From NCBI GenBank assembly GCA_964036045.1, contig OZ038378.1, positions 9,052,001-9,116,000 of the forward strand: 64,000 bases of DNA. Direction: 5' to 3'. The position numbers and the translations under genes were made by a program. The stretch comes from Eutreptiella sp. 'Long Island Sound 2002' (Eukaryota > Protista > Euglenida). Positions 1 through 21,982 of this stretch are shown piece after piece (the stretch's first letter is position 1; the number at the start of each line of letters is the position of its first letter). Below the pieces are notes generated by a model. That model searched no databases and was not told the origin of the DNA. It worked only from the letters and a program-made list of their open reading frames with translations.

Positions 1-2602
1 CCTCCTCTTCCCGAACGTCGTACTTCTCTTCGGGCTTCAACTTCCGGAGTTCGCCATGCTCCTGAGCGTCTCGGCTCTTCTCTGGCTCCAATCTCCGGCG
101 TGGTCTCCACCGAGTCCACAATGCGCATCCGGGGCGTACTATGGCAGGGCTCATAAGGGCCCAAGTCCCCGCGTCGGCGGTAGGTAGGGGCAGCAGGTAC
201 GCCTCTGCTACCATAAAGAAGGTCCCTACCAGGACCGGCCCCTGCTGTGCCCCTTCCGCCTGTTACCCCGGCTGACTTGCTCCTGATCAGCGATTGCATT
301 TCTCAAAATTCAGGGTCCAAAATCCAAAAATATAGAAAATACAATCCTCCTTCAACCCTGAACAGCAACCAGATCCCACAAATACAGCAATAACCCAATC
401 CACACTGCGGGCTTCCGTTCAGCACACCGGTTGTCTCACGGTGGCGGGCATGTACAAGAATTGCACCAAAGAGGAAAGCCCTGAAATTGACATATGAACA
501 CAAATAAAGCAAAGTTGGGGAAAGATGGAAACATACACAATCATAGCCATAGACCCCTCATTCCCTGGACTCGAGACCTTCCCTTGACTCGCCAACATGA
601 TGCCCTGAACCCAGTCAAATAAGATGGTTAAATGCCATGTGTCAAAAGTCACTACAAAAACCCGAAAAATGTGTTCACTCCCAAGCCTCTAAATCCTAGC
701 CCAATAGGGGAGGTGGCGTGTCATGGCCTGGAGTGGCACTCAGGACCATGCCCTACCCTGACATAATCTTGGTTGGACTTGGAGTCGATTGGGCTTGGAG
801 AACTGCCCCATGAAGATGACCTCACACCATGGCAAAATCAGGCAAAACACACCATTATGCCAAAAAACCAATTATATACTCAAAAATGCACACGGCAAAT
901 ATTCAAATGCTCCATGCATGTGTCAAACCGGAAAGTAGTATACAAGGGTGATATAGACCAAAGGTCCATGCCCAAGAATATCCCATCATTGGCTCCGAAA
1001 CCCCTTCCGGTTATGTACATGACATGCTTCACAAGTCAGCTCATGACCTTGAGACCTAATTTTGTGAGACCTCGTGTGCCAAGCCAAAGTGACCACGCAA
1101 TCCGGCATATGGTGAGGTACAACACCCAAGCATATGCCAACATATCAGCAACATACCATGGTTCACAGATCTCTAGGCACTTTACTGTTAGCCGACCAGT
1201 TGAGCAAATAAAACACAAAAATGAGCATAAAATGAGGTCAAAAACATGCAAATAATGCCAAATTCAAGATAATTACAATAGTATATAACTTCGCTCACCC
1301 ATGGTATCAACATAAGATTCAAAGCACAATTGCTTGGGACCATTTGCAAACAATCCCCCCACTTGAATCCTCACATGGACGCATAGGGACACCTTCGAAC
1401 CTCCTCCCAACACGCACCATGAAAATGGGAAAATTGATAGTGGCGCTTGTGGGTTGCTTCGTAAGCCCTCCCACATGCACTATATGAGCGGTAGACTTAG
1501 TCTAGCGCCATGGAGTTCATCATTGGGACATGGGCAAAGCCCTTGCCACGTATGGCGCCATATATCTTCCTACAAACGGAGATATATAACATGGGCGTGA
1601 GCATATCGAAGCACATACCATGCATATAACACATACCCTCAAAACGTGGCTCCCAACATGATATGCCATGCCCCTCCATTGGCATAACTTCACGTTAAAA
1701 ATACGTAGGAACCCAAGGAAAGTTTCTATGCAACACCAACACTCATGCGGCACACTGGAAAGTTGCATTAAAATATTCGGTTGCACGGTCCAAGAGATAT
1801 ACATAACTTTCTACCCTCTTGACCATTATCCCTTGCTACACCGGGCATGTGTACACACCAAAGGCGTTTGATGCTTCCTAAATTAAGTTGAGACCAAGGC
1901 GGTTCCAACCCAATTCTCGAAATTGATATTCCCCGCCGTGAGCCGGAGATATGATTCTTCAAAGTGGCCTCACGAATCACTTTTGTTTCGACTATATCTC
2001 CAAGAGAAATAAGACAGACGACAAAACGAAGGATGATTCGTGATCGGGGATAACTGTAGGACCACTCGAGATTCATCATATCAAGTGCGGCGATGTCGAA
2101 GTCGAAAATCCGATTCCGAAAGTCTGAAAAAATCGGATTAATTTTGCGAGTGTATAATATGAAAATTGCGGAAGCAACGAACCCTTTACTGATGAAATCT
2201 GACCCTTCATCGGGGTTTCCGCCAAAATATCTGTAAATAACAGTTAACCAATCGGTTACCGCAGAATCGCGAGCCAACTGACAGTCGCCGATACATTGAC
2301 AATCAGAACGGAAGGCGGAAAAATTATGGAAACATTATGATAAAAAAACCCTGTTGATTCCTGATATTCTGATATATAAATCTCAGCTGGCGGCGCCTCG
2401 GTACTGAATATGGCCGCTCATAGCCGGAATGGCCAAACCTATCACACTATCACATCGGGTTAGGCCAGGTGGATGGGAGAGTATGATATCAGCCAATGGC
2501 GGCTTGCCGGCACATAGATACACACCCCAAGTGACCCCAAGATGGCCACGGGGGTCCGAACCGGCTTCACCACGATGCCCTTCGCGCTGGCACTCTTCAT
2601 CC

Positions 2603-2992
2603 TACAGAGTTGTCGATAAATGGCGCGATGCTATTTGTGAATATTTTTATGAGCACCATTCCTTTACCCCACAGTATGACGCTTTTGCTAATCGTGAGAA
2701 CAAACGGTTTGATAATTACTTTCGCGACGCTGGGACCCAAAAATGGGACAAGAAGTTATGGATTAATCCTCCGTTTCACTTAATCCAGCAAGTCATCCAC
2801 AAAATCAAGCAGGATAAAACCCAGGCGATTTTAGTTGTACCCTTGTGGGACGACAAGCAGTGGCTTCAGGAATTGCAGGACATTTGTGTAGATTACATCG
2901 AACTTCCCAGGAAAATTAAGCTGTACGCCAGAAACGACACAGGTCCCCTGCGACAGCGCTCCTGGAGTTCGCTCGCATTTCTGGTGGATGGA
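2603..2992 (+). CDS. Dam-like N6-adenine DNA methyltransferase domain inside the E1 polyprotein
   Basis: YDAFANRENKRF (DxFA-type motif), then LWINPPF at 2765-2776 (amino-MTase motif IV), then IQQVIHKI...AILVVPLW...W; same pattern as the MT domain of DIRS1-type retroelements and phage Dam-like enzymes. Followed by a Ser/Asp-rich linker and then RT. Confidence 0.85.
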
Positions 2993-3582
2993 GGGCTTCC
3001 TGACTGTGATTCTGCTGATTCTGGGACTGATTCTTGTGTTGGGTCAGAATCTGAGGTTGAGCGTGGTAGTGATGATGAATGTATTTTTTCCGATTTTTCT
3101 CCGTCAGATGCTGAAGGTGATCCGTCGTCAAATGGATCCGCCTCGTCTCCCTCTTCCCCAATACGATCGACATCGAAAGGAATCTTCAGTGCACGGGCAA
3201 ACAAAAATTTAAATCGCGCCGCAAATTCAGAGTTTTTTACGAAAAACCTCGTATGGAAGCTTTGAATGATCCTTTCGAGGAGCTGGATCACAAAGATAAT
3301 CTCTGGAATGCCGGTACTTGACCCACCTACCTCCAAGAGGCAGTTGATACGGACCTTTTCGAGACATCCGTAAGAAGATTCTTCCTGCTAAGGCGGAGGA
3401 GATTGCCAGAGTTTTTTCCACAATTATTCCTGGTGATCAGGTGGACACTGAGTTGTGTTCCAGGAAAAGAGAAAACCTTTTCGAGGGACAGAAGGACACA
3501 ACCCTTTCCGGCAAGTTAGTCAAGAACCCCCCGGTCCGTGGGCAGTTCGGTGAAGCCTTCATCCAGCTTCGTGAGGGGTAAA

Positions 3583-8989: not shown

Positions 8990-9497
8990 TATGAGCATGG
9001 ACTTGTCTAGTGTTCTCGCTGCCCTCTCCTCCCCTATGGTCCCCTCGGTCACCGGAACAATCAATCAGGTCGCATCCCCGCACGGCTGCCTCCCGGGCCT
9101 AGCCGGCCCTGAGCCCTCCGGCCCTCTCATCAACCCCGGACAGCACTTGCACAAAGATGGACGAGGAGGCCCTGACCGCAGGCCAAACAAGGACAAGAAC
9201 GCGAACCAGTCCGGAGGGAATCCCAATACTACGCCAGGGGGGAACTCTAAGCCTTCTGGTGGGCAATCAAACACGGGACCTACGACCCGTTCCCAGGCGC
9301 AAGCCCAACAAGAACAAGGGACTACGCGTGCCAAGGAAGATGGGGACCAGTCACACGCCCGCAAACGCCCCCGTTTCATGCGCATGGCGCGGAAACTGCA
9401 GAAGAAGGGGTTTGAAGTGACCTGCCCCGCGGAGTTCTGACAGGGACGCTCCGGGGGTTCTACAGATCTGGTGTTCGGGCTACTTATCCGTCTTGGG

Positions 9498-9800
9498 GGA
9501 CGTGAAAACCTGGGGGTACTGGATACTGGGGCCACTATATCTATTGTGGCCAAGAAAAGTTTACCTCAGGGGGACCTGAAGAACATCATGCCTACCGCAG
9601 CCATCCGCATGGGGGATGGGCATGTGGTGCACAGTTCTGGGGACTGTGAGGTCAAAGTGCCTATGGGATCTAGGAGCACTGCCCATCGGTTCTACGTGAT
9701 GGACACCGAAGCCTTCGACTTTGTCCTGGGGACCGACTTCTTCGTCGAGCACTCCCAGATTCTATCCCTCACCCTGCAAGCACCCTACGTCCTCCAAGTC
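9498..9800 (+). CDS. Retroviral-type aspartic protease of E2
   Basis: LGVLDTGATISIV (Asp codon at 9522) and DFVLGTDFF C-terminal motif. Confidence 0.9.
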
Positions 9801-9917
9801 GACCATGGTGACGGATGGGAATCTGTACCTCTGGAGCAGTCCGAACACACGTCTAGCTACCTGAGGGTATGCAAGCAGGAGGCCTCAACCATGATGGTCG
9901 CCTCCAAAACTGAGGAC

Positions 9918-10334
9918 TAACAGCTCCTTGGGGATGTCTTGGATCAAGGTCTAAAAGAGTTGGGATACTCCCGAGAAGACCTGAAAGTGCGGCTATTTCC
10001 CAGCGACAAGCAACATATCCTGGACCTCTACTGCAGCAAAGGGAAAAATTGCTGCTATAAATTTTACTGGCCCTCTTTCGGGATGGCCTACGGGAACCCA
10101 AGATTCAGTGAACTGGGGAAGGTCCTGACCAAGGTGGCCCTGGAACGTTCCCGTATGATCCTGTGCTTTCCCGATTGGGGAGCCCATGGGGGAAATGAGT
10201 ACCGGCGTACTCTATTGGACAAGCTGACGCTCACCTCCATGCAGCTGCCGGATGACGCCATCTACGTGCCTCTGGGCCGCAAGACGCCAATCCGGAGACC
10301 TGGATGGGGGAGCATACTAAGCGTGCTGGACGGG
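9918..10334 (+). CDS. Divergent Dam-like adenine methyltransferase domain of E2, between protease and RT
   Basis: VRLFPSDKQH / AYGNPRFSELGKVLTKVALERSRMILCFPDW / LPDDAIY...PIRRPGWGSILSVLDG aligns by eye with the E1 domain (LWINPPF...IHKI...ILVVPLW / LPRKIKLY...PLRQRSWSSLAFLVDG); NPRF at 10095-10106. Confidence 0.75.
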
Positions 10335-13300
10335 AGCCTAGCCCCAGTGCCCTGGGAAGATCCAGACCCTGCTATGGTCCAGGAAATTCAACGTGAGAGC
10401 AGCGGTTACACCCTGGATGTCCTGAAAAATCAACTACGACCTCGAGTCGCCGTAGAGACTACTCTTGGGGGAGACGAGTACGTGGTGTCTGACACTGTTG
10501 CCCCCAGCTCCCCCTGCCGTGTACCTAATCCTGATGTAGTCTCAGAGTGTGGGCTATCCGAGCTACCCAGCTCTATACACTCTGATGACGAGATTGAGCA
10601 TGACGCCTTCTTTGTGCAGACGTGCGTGGGGGAAGTGGAGAACGCCGAGTACGCTACCCCACTGAAACCCCTACTCTCCATGAGGGGAGAGGAGCCCCTG
10701 GACGAGGAGCTGGATCACCGATCCACGCTGAGAGAGTACCTGGACTCCAAGAGGAGATTGGTGGTGAAAACGCTATGCTACGCTAGGCCTACCCGCCGCT
10801 CCTGGCCGGTGAAGCAATGGTCTATGGGAGATATCTCCCAACTGAAGGAGGACCTCGAACAGAAAATTACCACCTGGCAAAGAGAGGTGGATCTGAAGCT
10901 CATGAAGAGCGTGTGGGGTGCCCATGTGAGGACCCCGGAGGAGGATGAACTCTCAGAGGAATGCGTATGCGAGCCCCCTCGAGTGTGCCCATGTTGTCAC
11001 CGTCCACCTGAGACTGTGGAACAGGACCTTCTCTACGCCTACCAAGGGCTGAAGGATACGACCAAGGACGCTGAGCCGGTTGAGGACCACCTCCCCGCTT
11101 CTATACACCAAGGGGCAAGCAATCTACACTCTGACGAGGACATGGAGGACAAGATCAAACTCTTGGACCCTAGAGTACAGAAGCTGATCAGGACCTATCT
11201 GGAGGTATTCGGAGAACTACCCCCTCCAGCCTCCTGTGACAAGCTGGTACAGATGGACCTCAAGCTGAAGCCCGAGTTCGTGGGTCACAAGATACGTAGG
11301 AGACCCTACCCGGCTCCAGAAGAGCAGGCCGCTGAGATGGAGTGACAGATACAAGAATGTATCGACGCTGGTCTGGTCCTGGAGTACAAGGATGGGGACT
11401 ACCCCCAACACTGCAGCCCCTGTTTCCTGGTGGCTAAGCCTGGGTCTACAGCCAAACGGCTGGTAGTGGACTATGGAGAGCTGAACAAGAAGACACTGAA
11501 CCACTCAGGGTCCATTCCTAACATGGAGTCAACCCTCAAGAAGATAGCCTCCTGCCGCGACAAGACGAAGATGGACAAGCGGAGTGGATTCTGGCAAGTG
11601 CACCTGACGCCCAATGCCCAGGAACTCCTAGCCTTCATCACCCCTCAGGGGAGGGTGTTCAAGTGGAAGGTCATGCCCTTTGGCGTGGCTAACGCACCCG
11701 CTCTTTTTCAAGAGCTCATGAACGAGATGCTATCCATCCTATGTCGGAGACGTGTGGTGCAACAACTCATATCCCGGGGCGCGCAGATGGAAGCACACAT
11801 CGAGGACGTATGTCTGGGAACGAATACCCAAGAGGACCACCTCATCCTCTTGGGCGAGTTCTTTGCAGTCTGCCAGGAGAACCACACCAGACTCAAGCTG
11901 GAGAAGTGTCAGTTCATGCAGGAGACTATGCAGTACTTGGGGTTCGACATTGGCTATGGGTGGTGGACCCCAGCGGCCTCTAAGGCCAAACCCCTGATGG
12001 ATGCTAAGGTACGACATGAAGACCCCAAGAAAGGACTCCATGATGTACGCAGTTTGATTGGTGCCTGCAACTTCTACCGCTGCCACATCAAAAATTTCAT
12101 TTACACCAGCGCCATCGTGACGGATCTCATCAAGAAGAGTACTACCTGGCGCTGGGGCCCTCAAGAACAACAAGCGTTTGACGAGCTCCAGGACAAAATG
12201 GCCAACGCTAAGTGCTTGAACGTGCCTAGAGCACAAGGGGAAATTATCTTGGTGACTGACGCCAGCAATGTGGGCGCAGGTGGGACGTTGTTCCAGTGGC
12301 AAGCACTAGAGAAGGAGGAGTTCGACTCGGCCATTTCCCAATGAGGTACTGATGGACTAAACCGAGACGGTACTCTCAAGCACAGCTACCCTGACGACAA
12401 AGGGGTCGTGGTTCCCCTGGGTCATTGGAACTGGAAATGGAACTAGGCCCGGGGTAACTATTCTACCTATGAGCAGGAACTGCTCGCGGGTATGCTAGTG
12501 CTATCCTCTTAGTCCCGATTGTTGGGGAGTAACCCAGTGGTTTGGCTGTGTGACCAAGAACCGGTCCGCACCTTCCAGAAGGGACCCCCACCTGAGAAGG
12601 CTAAGCTCAGACGCTGGTGGACCTATCTGAGCCAGCTACGGCTCTCAGTACATCATATTGAGGGCGTCAAGAAGGAGTGTGCGGATTACATCAGCCGCAA
12701 CAAATTTGACGACATGATTGGTGCCAGGTCTGAGGAGCTAGCCAAGGAGGCATTCAGCTGTATGGATGTACACCTGGACCTCAACATGACCATGATCAGA
12801 CCGGTAGATGGACTCCGACAAGCGGAGTACCTAAAAGATTTTGGGGACATCTACAAACGCCTGCAGAAGCGTCTGGAACCTGCCCTGGTCAACCAGGAGC
12901 AGTGGAAGCGGGACAAGACCTACCTCTGGCATGAGGACCAGATAGTCGTGCCTAACGATCTTATCCCGGCACTCCTCAAGTGGACCCATGAGTCCAGTGG
13001 TCATGTGGGAGCGAACCGTACCCTGAGGCTGTTCAAGCAGTGGTTCCACTCTACGTGGACGGACGATCAGCTGCGGAAAACCCTCCAGCCCATCGTGGAC
13101 AAGTGCCCGTGTCGGTCCTGTAAACCTGGGGATATCAGGGACAGAGGTCTCTATTCGACGCTCCCTATCCTGCACTGTGCCAACAATGTTCTCTACGTGG
13201 ACTACATGGAGATGCCTAAGTTTGGGGGCTATGACGTTGCCCTAGTGGTAACCTTGGGCTGACCAAGTTTACCAGGGTGTTCCCATGCACTAAACACATC

Positions 13301-14182
13301 ACCGGCGAGGAGACCATCAAGATACTCCTGGAAGAGTGGTTCTGTGTCTATGGGGCACCCAAAGAGATTAACTCAGACAAGGACGTCCGAGTACGCTCCG
13401 ACACTGGCTGGTGCAAGAGAGTCCTGAGGTCCCTCAACGTCCAATTGTCAACGGGGATTCCCTATACTCATACGAGTAACCCCCTATGTGAGCGACAGAT
13501 TCGAGTTCTCAAAGAGAACGTGAGGATATGGTGCAAGACAGAGCGCACCAAAGACTGGCTGAGACTACTCCCTGTCATATCCTTGATGATGAACTCCCAA
13601 GAGAGTTCGTCAACTGGCTATTCGCCCCATGAGCTGTTCATGGGACGCCCGGCGTGGTTCCTACACGCTCCCTATCCTGAGGATTCCTACTCCACTGTGG
13701 CTAAGTGGGTGAAGGAGCAACAAGACAAGGTGGACAAGGCCAAGGCTACACTCCAGAGAGTGAGGGAGCGCCAGTGGAACAAGAAGAACAAGCACCGGGT
13801 GCCAGCCTCCTACCAAGAGGGAGACTGGGTGCTGGTGCACCACCGTCTGCTACCCGCCTGGCCACGCTTCACCAGCGATGACCCCTACTTTGGGCCCTAC
13901 AAGATCCTCTCTGTGGATGGTTACCGCATCACCGTGCAGTGTTCTCCCCGACTAGGGGGGACCCTGGTGTGCGCTGCTCAACAGCTCAAGCGCTACTACG
14001 ACCCAAAGGAGCTCTGTGGGGAAGAATGGGAACTAAACGACGAGGAGATCGCCGCTCTGGACCTACAGGGCGCTGCCAGCCCGATGGAGGTTGAAGGAGA
14101 ACTCCCCGACATGACTGCCGCGGAGATGGCTAAGGAAGCCTTCTACCTGGTGGAATCGGTTATCCGACGCCGCTATCGCCAA

Positions 14183-15047
14183 TGACAGGGATTCAGGGGG
14201 GTCCTCGTGAATTTGAGCGGCACCGAAATTTTCGAACTTCAGACATTTTTTTTTAAAATCCTTCAAGATTTCTGAAAATCAATCAGTCTCAGGCCGATTC
14301 CATCTCTTTCTCACCAGATCTCCAACGCCCTCCTGGACCCTGACAAACACGAAGGCAAAGTTGGTGTTCTTTTCACACAATTCATTCAAGTCCACTCTTG
14401 CTCCACGTTGGTCGTTGTACAAATGATTCTGAGAGCCTTGCCACAGCCTCAGCACGCTCCATGGTGCAGGAGTGTTCCTGCACCTCGCCGCTGCTCTACA
14501 TGTCTGAAAATAGCAAATACAAATGCACTGACGGATCAAAATACATGTCTACCGAGTTAAAAAGTTAATAGTTAAAAGGCTGGGTAATTTTCAAACCCCT
14601 GCTCTGCTTAGTGATAAGGCGGTTATTGGATACACTCGGCGTTTGAAACACTGTGGAAGGCGTCCTACGGCGACGCTGATTTCACTTCAATTGAATTCCA
14701 AATTTCAGATCCAAACCTAAAATTCAACTATCGCCGTAACATAAAATCCACGTATCGTTACTTCAGACTTGTCGTAAAATTGATAAATCCATGTCTAAAT
14801 CCACTTGACTCGCAAAGAATAAAACTATTTCAAGATAAAAAATGCAGAACACGCGCGCGATGCCGACACTGCACCGGCTGCGCTCTCAGACTGAACACAC
14901 CACAACTGAGCCAGAAAACAAAACAATCAGGAGTCAAGCGGGTCGCTTCAGTAACTGTAAACAATAGAACAGTAACGTGAGTACTTTCAGTACCGAACAG
15001 AGCCTAGGATGAATCTGCGTATGGACAACAAGACCCCATACGCGTCA
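14183..15047 (-). repeat. LTR copy (865 bp)
   Basis: TGAC...CGCGTCA termini; about 20 substitutions versus the 16196 copy counted by eye. Confidence 0.9.
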
Positions 15048-15267
15048 CCACCCTCCCTAAGAGGTTATCACTGTGGTTAGAAAATCTCTGAACACAAAGG
15101 GAGGACCTAGGCTCGGTGGTCTCGACACACACAGAATGAATTTCAAAAGTAGAGCGCCACTCTAAACAGGACGCTGAGATAACGTGCACGGCGGGGCGAT
15201 GCAGGTTGTGTACCAATCATGGGTTCAGTGAGCGTGTAACGTGAAAATAGAAGCAAATACAAAAGGC

Positions 15268-15400
15268 AGCGCGTAGCTTGCCACACACTGCAGCGCAAAG
15301 CATGCAGGTAACACAGCGCGAAGCTTGCCATACACTGCAGCGCAAAGCATGCAGGTAACGCAGCGCAAAGCTTGCAGAAGAGGCAGCGCGAAGCTTGCCA
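15268..15400 (+). repeat. About 45-bp imperfect tandem repeat (GCAGCGCGAAGCTTGCCATACACTGCAGCGCAAAGCATGCAGGTAAC-like), also at about 17281-17413
   Basis: Two full units plus partial units are directly visible in each internal region. Confidence 0.75.
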
Positions 15401-15445
15401 TACATTCCGAGTAACTAAAATTTCCCAACATCTACAGAGCAATGA

Positions 15446-15943
15446 TTAATTATCCGATAAATCAAAACACCTCGAGAGGCGGTAACGGCTTGACGCTGGC
15501 GGCGGTTGATGGCGATGAGCGTGCGGGCTGCCTTCGTGTGCTTGGGCGGAGCGAACACGCCTTAGCTGGCGTTGGGCTGCTTTGCGGCGTCCACTGTTGT
15601 TGGCCTCGTCATCGCTGCTGCTCTCAGCCTTTGGCGTTCTGGAGATTGCCCGGAACTGCCTGGGCGTCCGCGGCAGCCATTGGCGGTTGGATGCTGCACG
15701 CCTCCCACACGTGGTTCTGCCGTCGCTGCTGCTATCGCTGCTGAGCTGCAGCTGGCGGCTGCGACTCCAGTCCTCACTGACGCTCCTCTGGTTGTGCCAG
15801 GCGCGGCGCTCAGCATCCCATTGCGCGTACTGGGCTTCTGGGTCGTTGCTGCGGATCTTGAAGTCACTGGCGCTGGTGTCGAGCTCACTGGTGGACAGAG
15901 GGTTTGACTGCAGTCCCTCTAGGTGGTCCATCCAGGCTTCCAT
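15446..15943 (-). CDS. 165-aa Ser/Arg-rich ORF in internal unit 1 (second copy at 17459-17956); unknown, possibly a gag remnant
   Basis: ORF open in both internal copies; overlaps an upstream acidic ORF (MEVYIGGIDVTDDEG..., ending at 15919 / 17932). No recognisable domain. Confidence 0.3.
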   Translation of the reverse strand: MEAWMDHLEGLQSNPLSTSELDTSASDFKIRSNDPEAQYAQWDAERRAWHNQRSVSEDWSRSRQLQLSSDSSSDGRTTCGRRAASNRQWLPRTPRQFRAISRTPKAESSSDDEANNSGRRKAAQRQLRRVRSAQAHEGSPHAHRHQPPPASSRYRLSRCFDLSDN

Positions 15944-16195
15944 CCATGGGGGCGTCCGAGGTCCTCTCCAGCTGTCACTGCTGCTCCGGCGTCCGATTCC
16001 TTCGCTGCTGCTGCTGGGGCACTGTCCAAAACCCAGCGGCTGTGATCTTGGTAGCTGCTGCTGCTGCCCTCGTCGTCCGTCACGTCTATGCCGCCGATGT
16101 ACACCTCCATGGGATGCTCTGCAGTGACAGGGGCCGGCGTCGCGAGGCGGTCAGGGGCTGGCACGGCAATAATGCCTGCTTTTTCAGAATTATTT

Positions 16196-17060
16196 TGACG
16201 CGGATTCAGGGGGGTCCTCGTGAATTTGAGCGGCACCGAAATTTTCGAACTTCAGACATTTTTTTTTAAAATCCTTCGAGATTTCTGAAAATCCTTCAGT
16301 CTCAGGCCGATTCCATCTCTTTCTCACCAGATCTCCAACACCCTCCTGGACCTTGACAAACACGAAGGCAAAGTTGGTGTTCTTTTCACTCAATTCATTC
16401 AAGTCCACTCTTGCTCCACGTTGGTCGTTGTACAAATGATTCTGAGAGCCTTGCCACAGCCTCAGCACGCTCCATGGTGCAGGAGTGTTCTTGCACCTCG
16501 CCGCTGCTCTACATGTCTGGAAATAGCAAACACAAATGCACTGACGGATCAAAATACATGTCTACCGAGTTAAAAAGTTAATAGTTAAAAGGCTGGGTAA
16601 TTTTCAAACCCCTGCTCTGCTTAGTGATAAGGCGGTTATTGGATACACTCGGCGTTTGATACACTGTGGAAGGCGTCCTACGGCGACGCTCATTTCACTT
16701 CAATTGAATTCCAAATTTCAGATCCAAACCTAAAATTCAACTATCGCCGTAACATAAAATCCACGTATCGTTACTTCAGACTTGTCGTAAAATTGATAAA
16801 TTTATGTCTAAATCCACTTGAATCGCAAAGAATAAAACTATTTCAAGATAAAAAATGCAGAACACGCGCGCGATGCCGACACTGCACCGGCTGCGCTCTC
16901 AGACTGAACACATCACAACTGAGCCAGAAAACAAAACAATCAGGAGTCAAGCGGGTCGTTTCAGTAACTGTAAACAATAGAACAGTAACGTGAGTACTTT
17001 CAGTACCGAACAGAGCCTAGGACGAATCTGCGTATGGACAACAAGACCCCATACGCGTCA
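16196..17060 (-). repeat. Central shared LTR copy (865 bp)
   Basis: Perfect 7-bp terminal inverted repeats TGACGCG / CGCGTCA. Confidence 0.9.
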
Positions 17061-18208
17061 CCACCCTCCCTGTGAGGTTATCACTGTGGTTAGAAAACCT
17101 CTGAACACAAAGGGAGGACCTAGGCTCGGTGGTCTGGACACACATAGAACGAATTTGAAAAGTAGAGCGCCACTCTAAACAGGACGCTGGGATAACGTGC
17201 ACGGCGGGGCAATGCACGTTGTGTACCAATCATGGGTTCAGTGAGCGTGTAACGTAAAAGTAGAAGCAAATACAAAAGGCAGCGCGTAGCTTGCCACACA
17301 CTGCAGCGCAAAGCATGCAGGTACCACAGCGCGAAGCTTGCCATACACTGCAGCGCAAAGCATGCAGGTAACGCAGCGCAAAGCTTGCAGAAGAGGCAGC
17401 GCGAAGCTTGCCATACATTCCGAGTAACTAAAATTTCCCAACATCTACAGAGCAATAATTAATTATCCGATAAATCAAAACACCTCGAGAGGCGGTAACG
17501 GCTTGACGCTGGCGGGGGTTGATGGCGATGAGCGTGCGGGCTGCCTTCGTGTGCTTGGGCGGAGCGAACACGCCTTGGCTGGCGTTGGGCTGCTTTGCGG
17601 CGTCCACTGTTGTTGGCCTCGTCATCGCTGCTGCTCTCAGCCTTTGGCGTTCTGGAGATTGCCCGGAACTGCCTGGGCGTCCGCGGCAGCCATTGGCGGT
17701 TTGATGCTGCACGCCACCCACACGTGGTTCTGCCGTCGCTGCTGCTATCGCTGCTGAGCTGCAGCTGGCGGCTGCGACTCCAGTCCTCACTGACGCTCCT
17801 CTGGTTGTGCCAGGTGCGGCGCTCAGCATCCCATTGCGCGTACTGGGCTTCTGGGTCGTTGCTGCGGATCTCGAAGTCACTGGCGCTGGTGTCGAGCTCA
17901 CTGGTGGACAGAGGGTTTGACTGCAGTCCCTCTAGGTGGTCCATCCAGGCTTCCATCCATGGGGGCGTCCGAGGTCCTCTCCAGCTGTCACTGCTGCTCC
18001 GGCGTCCGATTCCTTCGCTGCTGCTGCTGGGGCACTGTCCAAAACCCAGCGGCTGTGATCTTGGTAGCTGCTGCTGCTGTCCTCGTCGTCCGTCACGTCT
18101 ATGCCGCCGATGTACACCTCCATGGGCTGCTCTGCAGTCACAGGGGCCGGCGTCGCGAGGCGGTCAGGGGCTGGCACGGCAATAATGCCTGCTTTTTCAG
18201 AATTATTT

Positions 18209-19073
18209 TGACGCGGATTCAGGGGGGTCCTCGTGAATTTGAGCGGCACCGAAATTTTCGAACTTCAGACATTTTTTTTTAAAATCCTTCGAGATTTCTG
18301 AAAATCCTTCAGTCTCAGGCCGATTCCATCTCTTTCTCACCAGATCTCCAACACGCTCCTGGACCCTGACAAACACGAAGGCAAAGTTGGTGCTCTTTTC
18401 ACTCAATTCATTCAAGTCCACTCTTGCTCCACGTTGGTCGTTGTACAAATGATTCTGAGAGCCTTGCCACAGCCTCAGCACTCTCCATGGTGCAGGAGTG
18501 TTCCTGCACCTCGCGGCTGCTCTACATGTCTGAAAATAGCAAACACAAATGCACTGACGGATCAAAATACATGTCTACCGAGTTAAAAAGTTAATAGTTA
18601 AAAGGCTGGGTAATTTTCAAACCCCTGCTCTGCTTAGTGATAAGTCGGTTATTAGATACACTCGGCGTTTGAGACACTGTGGAAGGCGTCCTACGGCGAC
18701 GCTCATTTCACTTCAATTGAATTCCAAATTTCAGATCCAAACCTAAAATTCAACTATCGCCGTAACCTAAAATCCACGTATCGTTACTTCAGACTTGTCG
18801 TAAAATTGATAAATCCATGTCTAAATCCACTTGACTCGCAAAGAATAAAACTATTTCAAGATAAAAAATGAAGAACACGCGCACGATGCCGACACTGCAC
18901 CGGCTGCGCTCACAGACTGAACACACCACAACTGAGCCAGAAAAAAAAACAATTACGGATCAAGCGAGTCATTTCAGTAACTGTAAACAATAAAACAGTA
19001 ACGTCAGTACTTTCAGTACCAAACAGAGTGTATGACTAATCTGCGTATGGACAACAAGACCCCATACGCGTCA
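18209..19073 (-). repeat. LTR copy (865 bp; the 5' LTR on the - strand)
   Basis: TGACGCG...CGCGTCA; more divergent near 18940-19040. Confidence 0.9.
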
Positions 19074-20471
19074 CCAAAGGTGGCGTTTCCTCACCCTCTT
19101 GGAAGGGTTTGGAGTTGAAGAAGCTACCTGGGAACCCTCTTCTGCCTTTGTGCTTCCTGAGGGACCCCTGAATCGTGTTGTGGTAGACTACTTGTGCCAG
19201 AACAACCTAGGAGAGTTGCTGAGGCTCGCTGAAACGCTTGCCTCTCAGAAGAAGCCTAGGGACTGAACCCTTCCTATACCTGCCTATGTGTGTGTGAGTG
19301 TGCTGATCCTGAGGACCTATGAGCAAGCTGCAGAAATGGTGTCCTAATTATACCCAAGTCTGCACCCTTGCTGAACCCGGCGGATGTCTTTACACGGTGC
19401 CACGGGCTACGCCCCGGGTCTCTCAGCCCCTAGGTGCCCAATTTTTGTGCTGGCACAAGACTTCCTACGGAGAATACCCAGCGCTAACGCCAAGGTATTG
19501 GTTTTCCTACCTACCTTTTTGCACTGAACAGCGCCTTTTGTGGCTGGCCAGGCCAGTTTTCCTACCTACCTGCCTACTACAAGGGAGGGGTGGCCAAAAG
19601 CTATGAGGCATGAAAAAGCCTATTTGCAACACGGCCAAAACCTAGAGTACCATTGCCACTGCCCACCAAAACCCTGAAAAAATTTCAGGAAACAGGCGGG
19701 ACAGTGACACACACACTACAGGTCCTACACTCACTACAGTGGCACCAGCCTTCGAAGGATGAGCTAGCTCTGGGCTCAAGCCCTCACCCAGGCCTACCAC
19801 TCCTACACACACACGCTACTTGGTGTTGGGGAAGAACATGTCTCAGGCCCTAGTGGCCCACCTGTGAAAGGACAAGAGAACACAGCGCTACTAAGCAACT
19901 GTGGCCTAACAGGGACACCACTACGTGTTTCTCTGTCAGGGCTTGGAGGGAAGGAGTGCTCTGTTTGCGTGCACAGCGTGTATGATGAACAGATCGGACT
20001 GCCCTCGCCACTCCTGGCTAAGGTACAGTTTGTTGATTGTGTGATCTGCACCGCATGGTTTAGCGCAGTAGGGAACTGCACCAATTCACCCTTACCTGCC
20101 CACCTGTAAAGCAGAGGCGGATGAACTTGGTTTGAGACGGAGGAACCAAGCCAGCCTCCACGTATTATACGCTTCTCAGGCTGACCTATAATACGCTGTT
20201 CCCAAACCAAATTACAAGCAAGCAAGCTTAAGGAACTCCACCCGTTCTCTTATAGACTATGGGGTGGAGCCCCTGGGTAACCTAAACAAGGGGTATACCG
20301 TGCGCAACACGCGTGGCCTACCCTTTAATGCGCCATATGCATGCACGGGTATGCAGGAGTCTGGCAATCGACTATTTTTATTCACTCAATCTCCAATAAT
20401 TCATACCCTTCTCAATCACGAACTCAACCAGGGGGTGGCCCCTCCTGGGCTTACTCACCTTACCTACCGCT

Positions 20472-20924
20472 GGAGAGAGAGAGCAAGAGGGAGCGTGACA
20501 CCAAACACAAGCGAAGCAAATCATTTATGCACACATGTGTATGTTCTAATCAGTGCTACAAAACAGGCAGGTTGGTGTGTAAGAGCAGTTGTCATGGTTG
20601 CCCCGCGTTGCATCGCAGGATAGGACCCTTAGCCCCCCATGACAACCAGTCCCTGGCCGAAAGCCATCGTTTTTGCCCCAATCTCACCTCTAATCATCGT
20701 GCAATCTCCTAATCAATCCCTCTACTCTACGTTTGCGTTGCTACACGACTTGTCAGCGGAAACACGAGACAAGCAATGAGCATGCTGCATGCGAAGCAAA
20801 CACAACCTGTATGTTTATACCTCTTTCTTTGAATTCATATTGAATTTTCGGATTCTTCATTCTTGATCTCCCCTAGAAGCATGCGTGGAATCTCTAGGTT
20901 TATTATTTATTGTGTGTCTCGTCA
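20472..20924 (+). repeat. Candidate PPT (20472-20493) and 3' LTR of E2 (20496-20924, TGAC...GTCA)
   Basis: Purine run GGAGAGAGAGAGCAAGAGGGAG followed by TGACACC; GTCA at 20924. No second copy in the window. Confidence 0.35.
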
Positions 20925-21982
20925 TTTCCTGATTATTACCTGACATACTGTTATAATCTTATTTTCTCTGTCTTTTCCGGCGCCCAATTAGGATGCGCTC
21001 CGGCGCGCCGCTTTTTTTTTGCGTGTAAATCCAGGGATTTAAAAATTCCTGTCATAAAATAAAATTGCGTAAAAATGTGCATTTGATGCACATGGAGATT
21101 CTGGACAGGTGTGTACCCTCAGAAAAATGCTAGGCCGTCATTTGACGGATTTTTGGTGTTTGTGTCGATCGTTGCGTGTTTGTCAGTCCCTAAACCCTTC
21201 GTCCCTTCTCTGTAGATATCCTGGAGCGCAAACAGTGGAGTAGGCCGTGTTCTGGCCGAAAAACTGACTCCTGGACCAATGTCCAGAATCCAACACCCCC
21301 ATGAGGGCAAAATAATTTTCAACGCCTCCCCCTTGCACTAAGGACGGATCAGGTCAGACAGCAGGTTCAACGAGACCCCAGACAGCGTGCCCCGATCGTA
21401 TCCTGCGTTGGGTTTTGTGTATTGCACTGCGTTTTGCTATTCGGAGGCAGAGGTGTATGCACACATGAATTGGTATGCCCATTCTCACCCCCTGCCAAGC
21501 CACAGCTGCCCCAGCGACGCCAATGAGCGCAGTGGGAGCTGTAGGTGTCTGTTATGACTAAGCAAAAACTGGCGACCGCCCTGACGCAGCGCCTTCTTTC
21601 CAATGTTAGGGATGGTATAGGAAATTTTAAAAAGATATCGAAGCCATGGAGAGGTCAAGAAAAGTTCCCTTTTTCCTTTGAAATGCGACAGTGGTGGCCA
21701 CCACAGCACAAGGGGTGAGTGAGAAAAAGTGTATTTCCCTGCCAAAAGGTTAACTTTAGTTGTCATAAAGAGGCCTAAAGGCATATCCCATTTTTATCTT
21801 AGTATTGGCCTATCCAAAAGGGGTGACAAGACATTTTGACCTATAAAACCAAGCATTGAACTATGGATGTTGTGTGGACCCCTGACCCCCCGCCTGATTG
21901 GACTTATACACCATTTCCTGGACTGACTGAGGCGCTGACATTAATCCTGAGCCTATACATTTTTCTATATTTTCTCATGAAT

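Follow-up and report, generated by a model that had tools for sequence, protein, structure and literature searches.

LTR retrotransposons that carry a Dam-like domain in pol (DAM-LTR elements) were described in May 2026 by Fernandez-Moreno et al. (bioRxiv 10.64898/2026.05.21.726589), who included a group from Euglena gracilis among them. The preprint screens with hmmsearch at E≤1e-5 and notes that nearly every DAM has an Asn-Pro-Pro triplet. It infers that LTR elements received the domain repeatedly from DIRS elements, in at least four transfers, and it separates two Euglena clades. Its authors propose that the Dam-like enzymes of retrotransposons write 6mA and let the elements pass as active chromatin, and they report that DAM-TE domains in dam-deficient E. 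coli gave no gain of 6mA.

The methyltransferase-like domain of DIRS1-type elements belongs to the same Dam-derived family, with D/E-L-F-A-S, NPPF, P-D-W and a C-terminal DG as its landmarks. DIRS elements have a tyrosine recombinase instead of an integrase and place their Dam-like domain after RT and RNase H, whereas the element examined here, E2, is a gypsy element in which the domain lies between protease and RT.

We analysed a window of 64,000 nucleotides, G000:C1:9052001-9116000, by which we mean the whole stretch of DNA under study, and find that its positions 9471-10334 encode a protease and a Dam-derived domain. Both belong to a dead copy, truncated at its 5' end, of E2, a highly abundant euglenid retrotransposon family of the Ty3/gypsy type (chromovirus-like). 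E2 resembles the described DAM-LTR elements in its Ty3/gypsy type, often with a chromodomain, in the prokaryote-derived Dam-like domain within pol, in its euglenid host and in its huge copy numbers. It differs from them in that it has NPR in place of the triplet and lacks a match to Pfam Dam. The kind of element is therefore one that the 2026 preprint already describes, but the selected, non-canonical NPRF motif is absent from that description.

The E2 copy in the window

Across the E2 family the order is gag, an in-frame stop, protease, DAM-like domain, linker, RT, RNase H, integrase and a putative chromodomain, and the Ty3/gypsy order of pol is confirmed by Pfam matches to RVP, RVT_1, RT_RNaseH(_2), Integrase_H2C2 and rve in the window copy together with a full-length copy. 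Full-length copies consist of an 833-aa ORF1, one in-frame stop and a pol of about 1640 aa. ORF1, presumed to be gag (L062:6904-9405, minus strand), has no Pfam match, and the C-terminal chromodomain of the full-length copy matches Pfam Chromo weakly (E 0.032).

The window copy keeps a single frame from 9471 across protease, methyltransferase-like domain, RT and RNase H, interrupted by point stops at 9918-9920 (TAA), 11343-11345, 12342-12344, 12444-12446, 12510-12512 and 13260-13262 and, near 13262-13277, by a frameshift. The sequence-only reading of this DNA had claimed one frame from protease to RT, broken by nothing but point stops, and an LDTGA protease; the frame is there with its stops located, and the protease motif is present and recognized by Pfam (Table 1). 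By blastn, 9154-14181 is homologous to the full-length copy at 84% nucleotide identity over 5039 bp. We call the copy 5'-truncated because this homology begins only at 9154, and dead because of its premature stops, its frameshift, that late start and a nested insertion; the first of the stops interrupts the domain's N-terminal helix. Beyond the insertion, the remainder of the element aligns in three blastn pieces (19081-19516, 19557-20552 and 20681-21380).

Table 1. Parts of the E2 copy, in window positions
Feature	Position	Strand	Basis
Gag-like ORF1, C-terminal remnant	9154-9440	+	blastn against full-length copy; TGA stop at 9438-9440, in the pol frame
Retropepsin-type aspartic protease	9471-9800	+	RVP 4.8e-5, gag-asp_proteas 5.7e-5; LDTGA at 9519-9533
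Dam-derived (DAM-LTR type) domain, predicted methyltransferase fold	9906-10340	+	N-terminal helix to C-terminal DG; hhalign, AF2
Motif I-like stretch, end of predicted beta1	9990-10007	+	alignment, secondary structure of the model
Motif IV, NPRF (AAC CCA AGA TTC)	10095-10106	+	after the beta4-equivalent strand, before the next helix
Linker, about 335 aa	10341-11345	+	between Dam-like domain and RT; no Pfam family
RT (11436-11951) and start of RNase H (12153-12308)	11436-12308	+	RVT_1 2.6e-25, RT_RNaseH_2 4.4e-11
Integrase	12519-14181	+	zinc-binding part 12948-13049 (Integrase_H2C2); core after the frameshift
First residues of the putative chromodomain, closing the integrase segment and cut at 14181		+	rve and Chromo in full-length copy; end of blastn match
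Nested insertion, foreign to E2, splitting the chromodomain	14182-19080	.	gap in homology, which resumes at 19081
Remainder of E2: end of pol and 3' region	19081-21380	+	71-81% identity to full-length copy

A single stop separates ORF1 from a pol in the same frame, both in E2 (window 9438-9440; L062:6904-6906) and in E1, the other gypsy family with such a domain (L035:748-750). This shared layout suggests that pol is expressed by readthrough of the stop codon.

Kinship, fold and history of the domain

The E2 domain, about 145 aa long, has no Pfam match. Thresholds as loose as E≤1 or E≤10 bring up no Pfam Dam match to it in either the window copy or an intact one, and searches of PDB sequences with shallow family profiles of E2 and E1 returned chance-level rows only. 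The E1 domain (2429-3265) does match Pfam Dam (PF05869), at 4.1e-5 and below the gathering score. Between the two domains BLASTP gives E 2e-5 over 82 aa, and hhalign of shallow within-family profiles gives 70% (E 3.9e-5). When the E2 domain was used as a phmmer query against 1.8 billion representative proteins, 400 matches appeared at E≤1e-3, many of them 33-50% identical. We built a deeper profile from E2, 21 remote relatives and the relic P0011, and it was the addition of these remoter relatives that made the comparison decisive: against the E1 profile, hhalign rose to 98.1% with E 6.9e-14 over 140 columns. The alignment begins at the E-x-Y-x-L helix near the N-terminus, reaches the DG at the C-terminal end and takes in every motif that had been listed from the sequence alone.

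That result bears out the earlier proposal that the E1 and E2 domains align along their length. A profile-profile comparison without homology had been named in advance as what would overturn the proposal, and homology is what we found. The accompanying claims hold as well, since blastn detects no nucleotide identity between E1 and E2 at E≤1e-3, and with about 30% identity in RT and about 25% in the DAM domain E2 is a second, divergent gypsy lineage.

Among the 24 members of the deeper profile, 17 match Pfam Dam (best 3.4e-7), the E2 rows not being among them; all matches of the relatives fall below the Pfam gathering score except that of one borderline relative. By profile-profile comparison and transitive evidence, we assign the E2 domain to the DAM family of eukaryotic retrotransposons ('DAM-LTR'), descended from phage Dam adenine methylases. 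E1 and relatives of E2 match Pfam Dam, a phage-type N6-adenine family, with which E2 shares the predicted class-I fold and a motif I-like stretch that precedes motif IV; E2 itself goes unmatched and reads NPRF at motif IV. In the terms of the preprint, E2 carries a Dam-family domain within the pol of a non-DIRS LTR element; it does not reach the screening threshold with the Dam HMM (E≤1e-5), and Asn-Pro-Arg stands in place of Asn-Pro-Pro throughout its clade. Since it has no Pfam Dam match, E2 may have escaped the preprint's screen, and it illustrates a part of DAM-TE diversity that HMM-based screens miss.

An AlphaFold (AF2) model computed from the deep alignment (pLDDT 90, pTM 0.86) predicts a class-I Rossmann-like methyltransferase fold. 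Foldseek against the PDB ranks PCIF1/CAPAM first (E 1.6e-3, probability 1.0, TM 0.60) and KsgA next, with nothing at E≤1e-3. A structure search independent of Foldseek again has PCIF1 as the best match (6irx, 6irw; Z 9.7, rmsd 3.0 over 133 residues), followed by KsgA, Erm and DIMT1 at Z of about 8 and METTL5 at 7.2, with T4 Dam (7.1), E. coli Dam (6.8) and M.TaqI (6.7) lower. The top matches are adenine-N6 enzymes, and the matches listed are SAM-dependent methyltransferases or unassigned proteins, save for dihydrofolate reductase at two low Foldseek ranks. One of the relatives matches Pfam PCIF1_WW at 4.3e-4, and PCIF1 itself uses an NPPF motif. PCIF1 differs, however, as a large RNA enzyme of the host that includes a helical domain; its sequence identity to E2 is about 15%, and a likeness of fold is no proof of a common substrate.

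Within the model, E-L-F-A-S closes the first strand (35-39) and NPRF follows strand 68-70 immediately and precedes helix 74-87, which would put them at the positions of motif I and motif IV (PMC7544214). Compared with an FxGxG-like motif I, E-L-F-A-S keeps the Phe and has its glycines replaced, as is also the case in the NPPF relatives; the window copy has private changes in this stretch, which is ELFAS in the family. Amino-methyltransferases have motif IV where strand beta4 ends, with the consensus (D/N/S)-P-P-(Y/F/W) (PMC7544214), and it is from this consensus that NPRF departs.

The order of protease then DAM, with RT downstream where the contig allows, recurs in E2, in a further family that we call E3 (L078) and in another lineage, L082, from the ENA assembly that also contains L078. 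In L063, a metagenome contig from JGI, gag and protease-DAM are followed by RT, RNase H, integrase and chromodomain; the assembled environmental contig L079 also has the protease-DAM order, and in several database proteins a protease precedes the Dam match by 60-90 aa. The earlier note had proposed PR-MT-RT-RH-IN-CHD as an old architecture of a whole lineage. The recurrence of the order in E2, E3, other lineages and environmental contigs speaks for it; for E1 the proposal holds less well, as the stretch upstream of its domain aligns only weakly with a protease. The 230 aa upstream of the Dam-like domain in E1 (L035:751-1446) have no Pfam protease match, read D-N-G where retropepsins show D-T/S-G, and align to the E2 protease weakly by BLASTP (E 0.039).

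It is quite possible that E1 on the one hand and E2 and E3 on the other gained their DAM domains in separate events, DIRS-type elements being one possible source, and that the shared position is convergent or the product of module exchange. The upstream stretch of E1 just described would fit this history, as would a DAM identity between E1 and E2 of only about 25% and the repeated DIRS-to-LTR transfers, at least four, that the preprint infers along with its two Euglena clades. Several observations pull the other way. The domain lies upstream of RT in every element, and the hhalign alignment covers the whole domain with its N-terminal helix. Moreover, in identity matrices of seven to nine elements, identity to E2 declines alike for DAM, RT and alignable protease, in the order window copy, KPRL relic (see below), E3, environmental and P0104 lineages, and E1. 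That DAM and RT rank the elements identically fits co-divergence of the domain with the element that carries it. Whether the domain was captured once or more than once is a matter of evolution and a question distinct from catalysis.

A selected NPRF motif and its possible function

Pro is found at the third position of motif IV in none of 44 genomic E2 copies; Arg is encoded there by AGA in 33 and by AGG in 9. The other residues also vary synonymously across copies (Asn AAC/AAT, Pro CCA/CCC, Phe TTC/TTT), and each non-synonymous motif variant is limited to one listed copy. We also surveyed 114 representative proteins that cover motif IV, binned by their identity to E2. At 60% identity or more, 0 of 60 have Pro at position 3; NPPF appears in 13 of 24 proteins at 45-60%, and NPPF or NPPW in 22 of 30 below 45%. 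The sister family E3 and remoter relatives read NPPF or NPPW, and all 21 relatives compared have the second Pro. Conservation among the relatives reaches 70% or more in 52 columns, and E2 retains 43 of these; the most conserved of those altered are the second Pro (100%) and the Ala directly before the motif (95%).

From these comparisons we conclude that NPRF is a trait of the E2 clade, derived from NPPF. This agrees with the argument made from the window copy alone, in which AGA was held to lie at least two substitutions from any Pro codon (it differs from every CCN at two positions) and NPRF was accordingly judged to be probably a family trait and not decay. Neutral decay as the source of NPRF is ruled out by the motif survey, the synonymous Arg codons and the dN/dS values given below.

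E3 (P0033-like) is a third very abundant DAM-LTR family, with canonical NPPF, and the nearest NPPF relative of E2. We analysed the copy L078:6305-11209, from an ENA assembly; its identity to E2 is about 49% in the domain and 78% in RT, and the family has 29,244 candidate places in the genome that contains the window, many of them lying in open frames of 1600 aa. KPRL is the motif of a relic lineage whose domain shares 67% identity with that of E2; Arg is kept there, and Asn and Phe are lost. Two places of this lineage were found (L066 G000:C3:25884011-25884523; L067 C1255:6499-7011), each in a 367-aa open frame.

E2 copies fall into older ones, to which the window copy belongs with 89-94% nucleotide identity in the domain, and a young subfamily, about 99% alike among its members and 84% identical to the window copy there. 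Between the young subfamily and six old copies (Nei-Gojobori, dS about 0.7), dN/dS is 0.08-0.11 for the Dam-like domain, as low as the 0.11-0.15 of the protease, and 0.03-0.23 for RT, with the proviso that such pairwise values blend the selected phase of a copy with its neutral decay after insertion. NPRF is present in both subfamilies, so the change from Pro to Arg is older than their split and the domain has been constrained since. Tajima's relative-rate test of the E2 against the E3 domain was not significant (14 versus 11 and 13 versus 15 unique changes), which rules out relaxed constraint after the change. These comparisons show that purifying selection has acted on the domain, its four motif residues among the rest, throughout the diversification of the family, and the domain has not evolved faster than that of E3. 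Such selection implies that the E2 element needs the domain.

The linker downstream of the domain is acidic and has a Cys-rich patch. It is without a Pfam match, yet its dN/dS of 0.12-0.15 indicates purifying selection in the E2 family, and it may be an unrecognized domain.

These rates also bear on whether the domain and its NPRF are neutral baggage, a decaying passenger of no use to the element. The window copy, dead and with private changes in its domain, would look just so. Across subfamilies, however, the domain changes as slowly as the protease, many copies hold it in an intact ORF of about 1640 aa, and Arg is maintained across AGA/AGG changes; dN/dS and the relative-rate test contradict a passenger, which we consider very improbable. 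Conversely, we hold with high confidence the joint statement that the domain belongs to the DAM family, that NPRF is a derived trait of the clade, and that the domain is selected and hence needed by the element.

What the domain does is a matter of lower confidence. Our best overall explanation, held with moderate confidence, is a selected Dam-derived domain with NPRF in which methyl transfer is likely impaired or changed. As to catalysis itself, we lean towards its being impaired or changed: the second Pro is otherwise invariant, and Arg would bring a charge to the junction of SAM and adenine, so that the domain is most likely not a conventional adenine-N6 methyltransferase. It would probably be a module with a pocket for SAM and/or adenine in which methyl transfer is impaired or altered, probably working in cis within Pol on the element's own nucleic acids. 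A precedent is METTL14, the partner of METTL3, in which a non-catalytic fold is retained despite an eroded motif IV, EPPL (PMC7544214). METTL14 differs in belonging to the MT-A70 family, in acting as a heterodimer partner and in keeping both prolines, whereas E2 keeps the first and last residues of the motif and loses the second Pro.

The conservation of N, P, R and F is compatible with a working active site as well as with a binding pocket. That the E2 domain continues to methylate adenine at N6, in DNA, RNA or an RNA:DNA hybrid, with NPRF tolerated or changing its specificity, is unlikely in our estimate, and nonetheless a serious alternative because the four residues themselves are conserved. 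Each of them is selected, with synonymous codon variants between the subfamilies; the motif I-like ELFAS and most of the conserved columns are retained, the rate shows no acceleration relative to E3, and the predicted fold is nearest to that of PCIF1, an active RNA adenine methyltransferase. The active adenine methyltransferases KsgA and Erm have N-L/I-P-Y, a change of the first Pro that is tolerated, so motif IV is not absolutely rigid. Weighing against activity are the invariance of the second Pro in 21 of 21 relatives and its place in the motif IV consensus (PMC7544214), and the fact that no DAM-TE has so far had its activity demonstrated. The relic sister copy with KPRL, in which K and L replace N and F, points the same way, although that copy is decayed. 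The E. coli assays of the preprint were negative even for NPP domains, and the difference between NPRF and NPPF may therefore not matter in that assay.

More specifically, and tentatively, impaired or changed methyl transfer could mean that selection maintains the E2 domain as a pseudo-methyltransferase or, as the PCIF1-like fold of the model hints, as an enzyme that has turned to another substrate, for instance the RNA of the element or its cap. Either way E2, which ranks among this genome's most successful retrotransposon families, would depend on the domain. If this is true, the DAM domains of LTR retrotransposons would serve by binding SAM, adenine or 6mA, or an RNA:DNA hybrid, instead of or besides writing 6mA, and a binding role would account for the negative heterologous DNA-methylation assays of DAM-TE domains. 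E2 and E3 offer a natural experiment in this respect, as sister families of the same architecture with selected NPRF in one and NPPF in the other, many intact ORFs and tens of thousands of candidate loci. A comparison of their 6mA load and of their recombinant domains would bear on whether catalysis matters to the element.

Copy number and occurrence of E2

The E2 domain has at least 19,011 candidate places in the 2.28-Gb genome. The 150 places that were scored have 83-89% protein identity to the window copy, and very many of them lie in 1642-aa open frames. The word depth of E2 is very high in sequencing runs of organisms A and B (Logan contigs). Near-identical E2 sequence is present in runs labelled with four organisms, as well as in metagenomes from estuary, sediment and urban samples and in metatranscriptomes from estuaries; the stretch L062:1969-6876 was compared with runs X1, X5, X8 and X14. 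Contigs of the estuary metatranscriptome X8 span the entire E2 pol at about 98-99% identity, which attests to presence in contigs and is no proof of transcription.

The 24-nt Euglena spliced-leader sequence occurs 5,458 times in the genome, on both strands, and 0 times in a reversed control, which marks the host as a euglenid. Its copies are dispersed over chromosome-sized contigs, beyond a tandem array, with the first 100 listed spread along C1 (for example, G000:C1:29492-29515).
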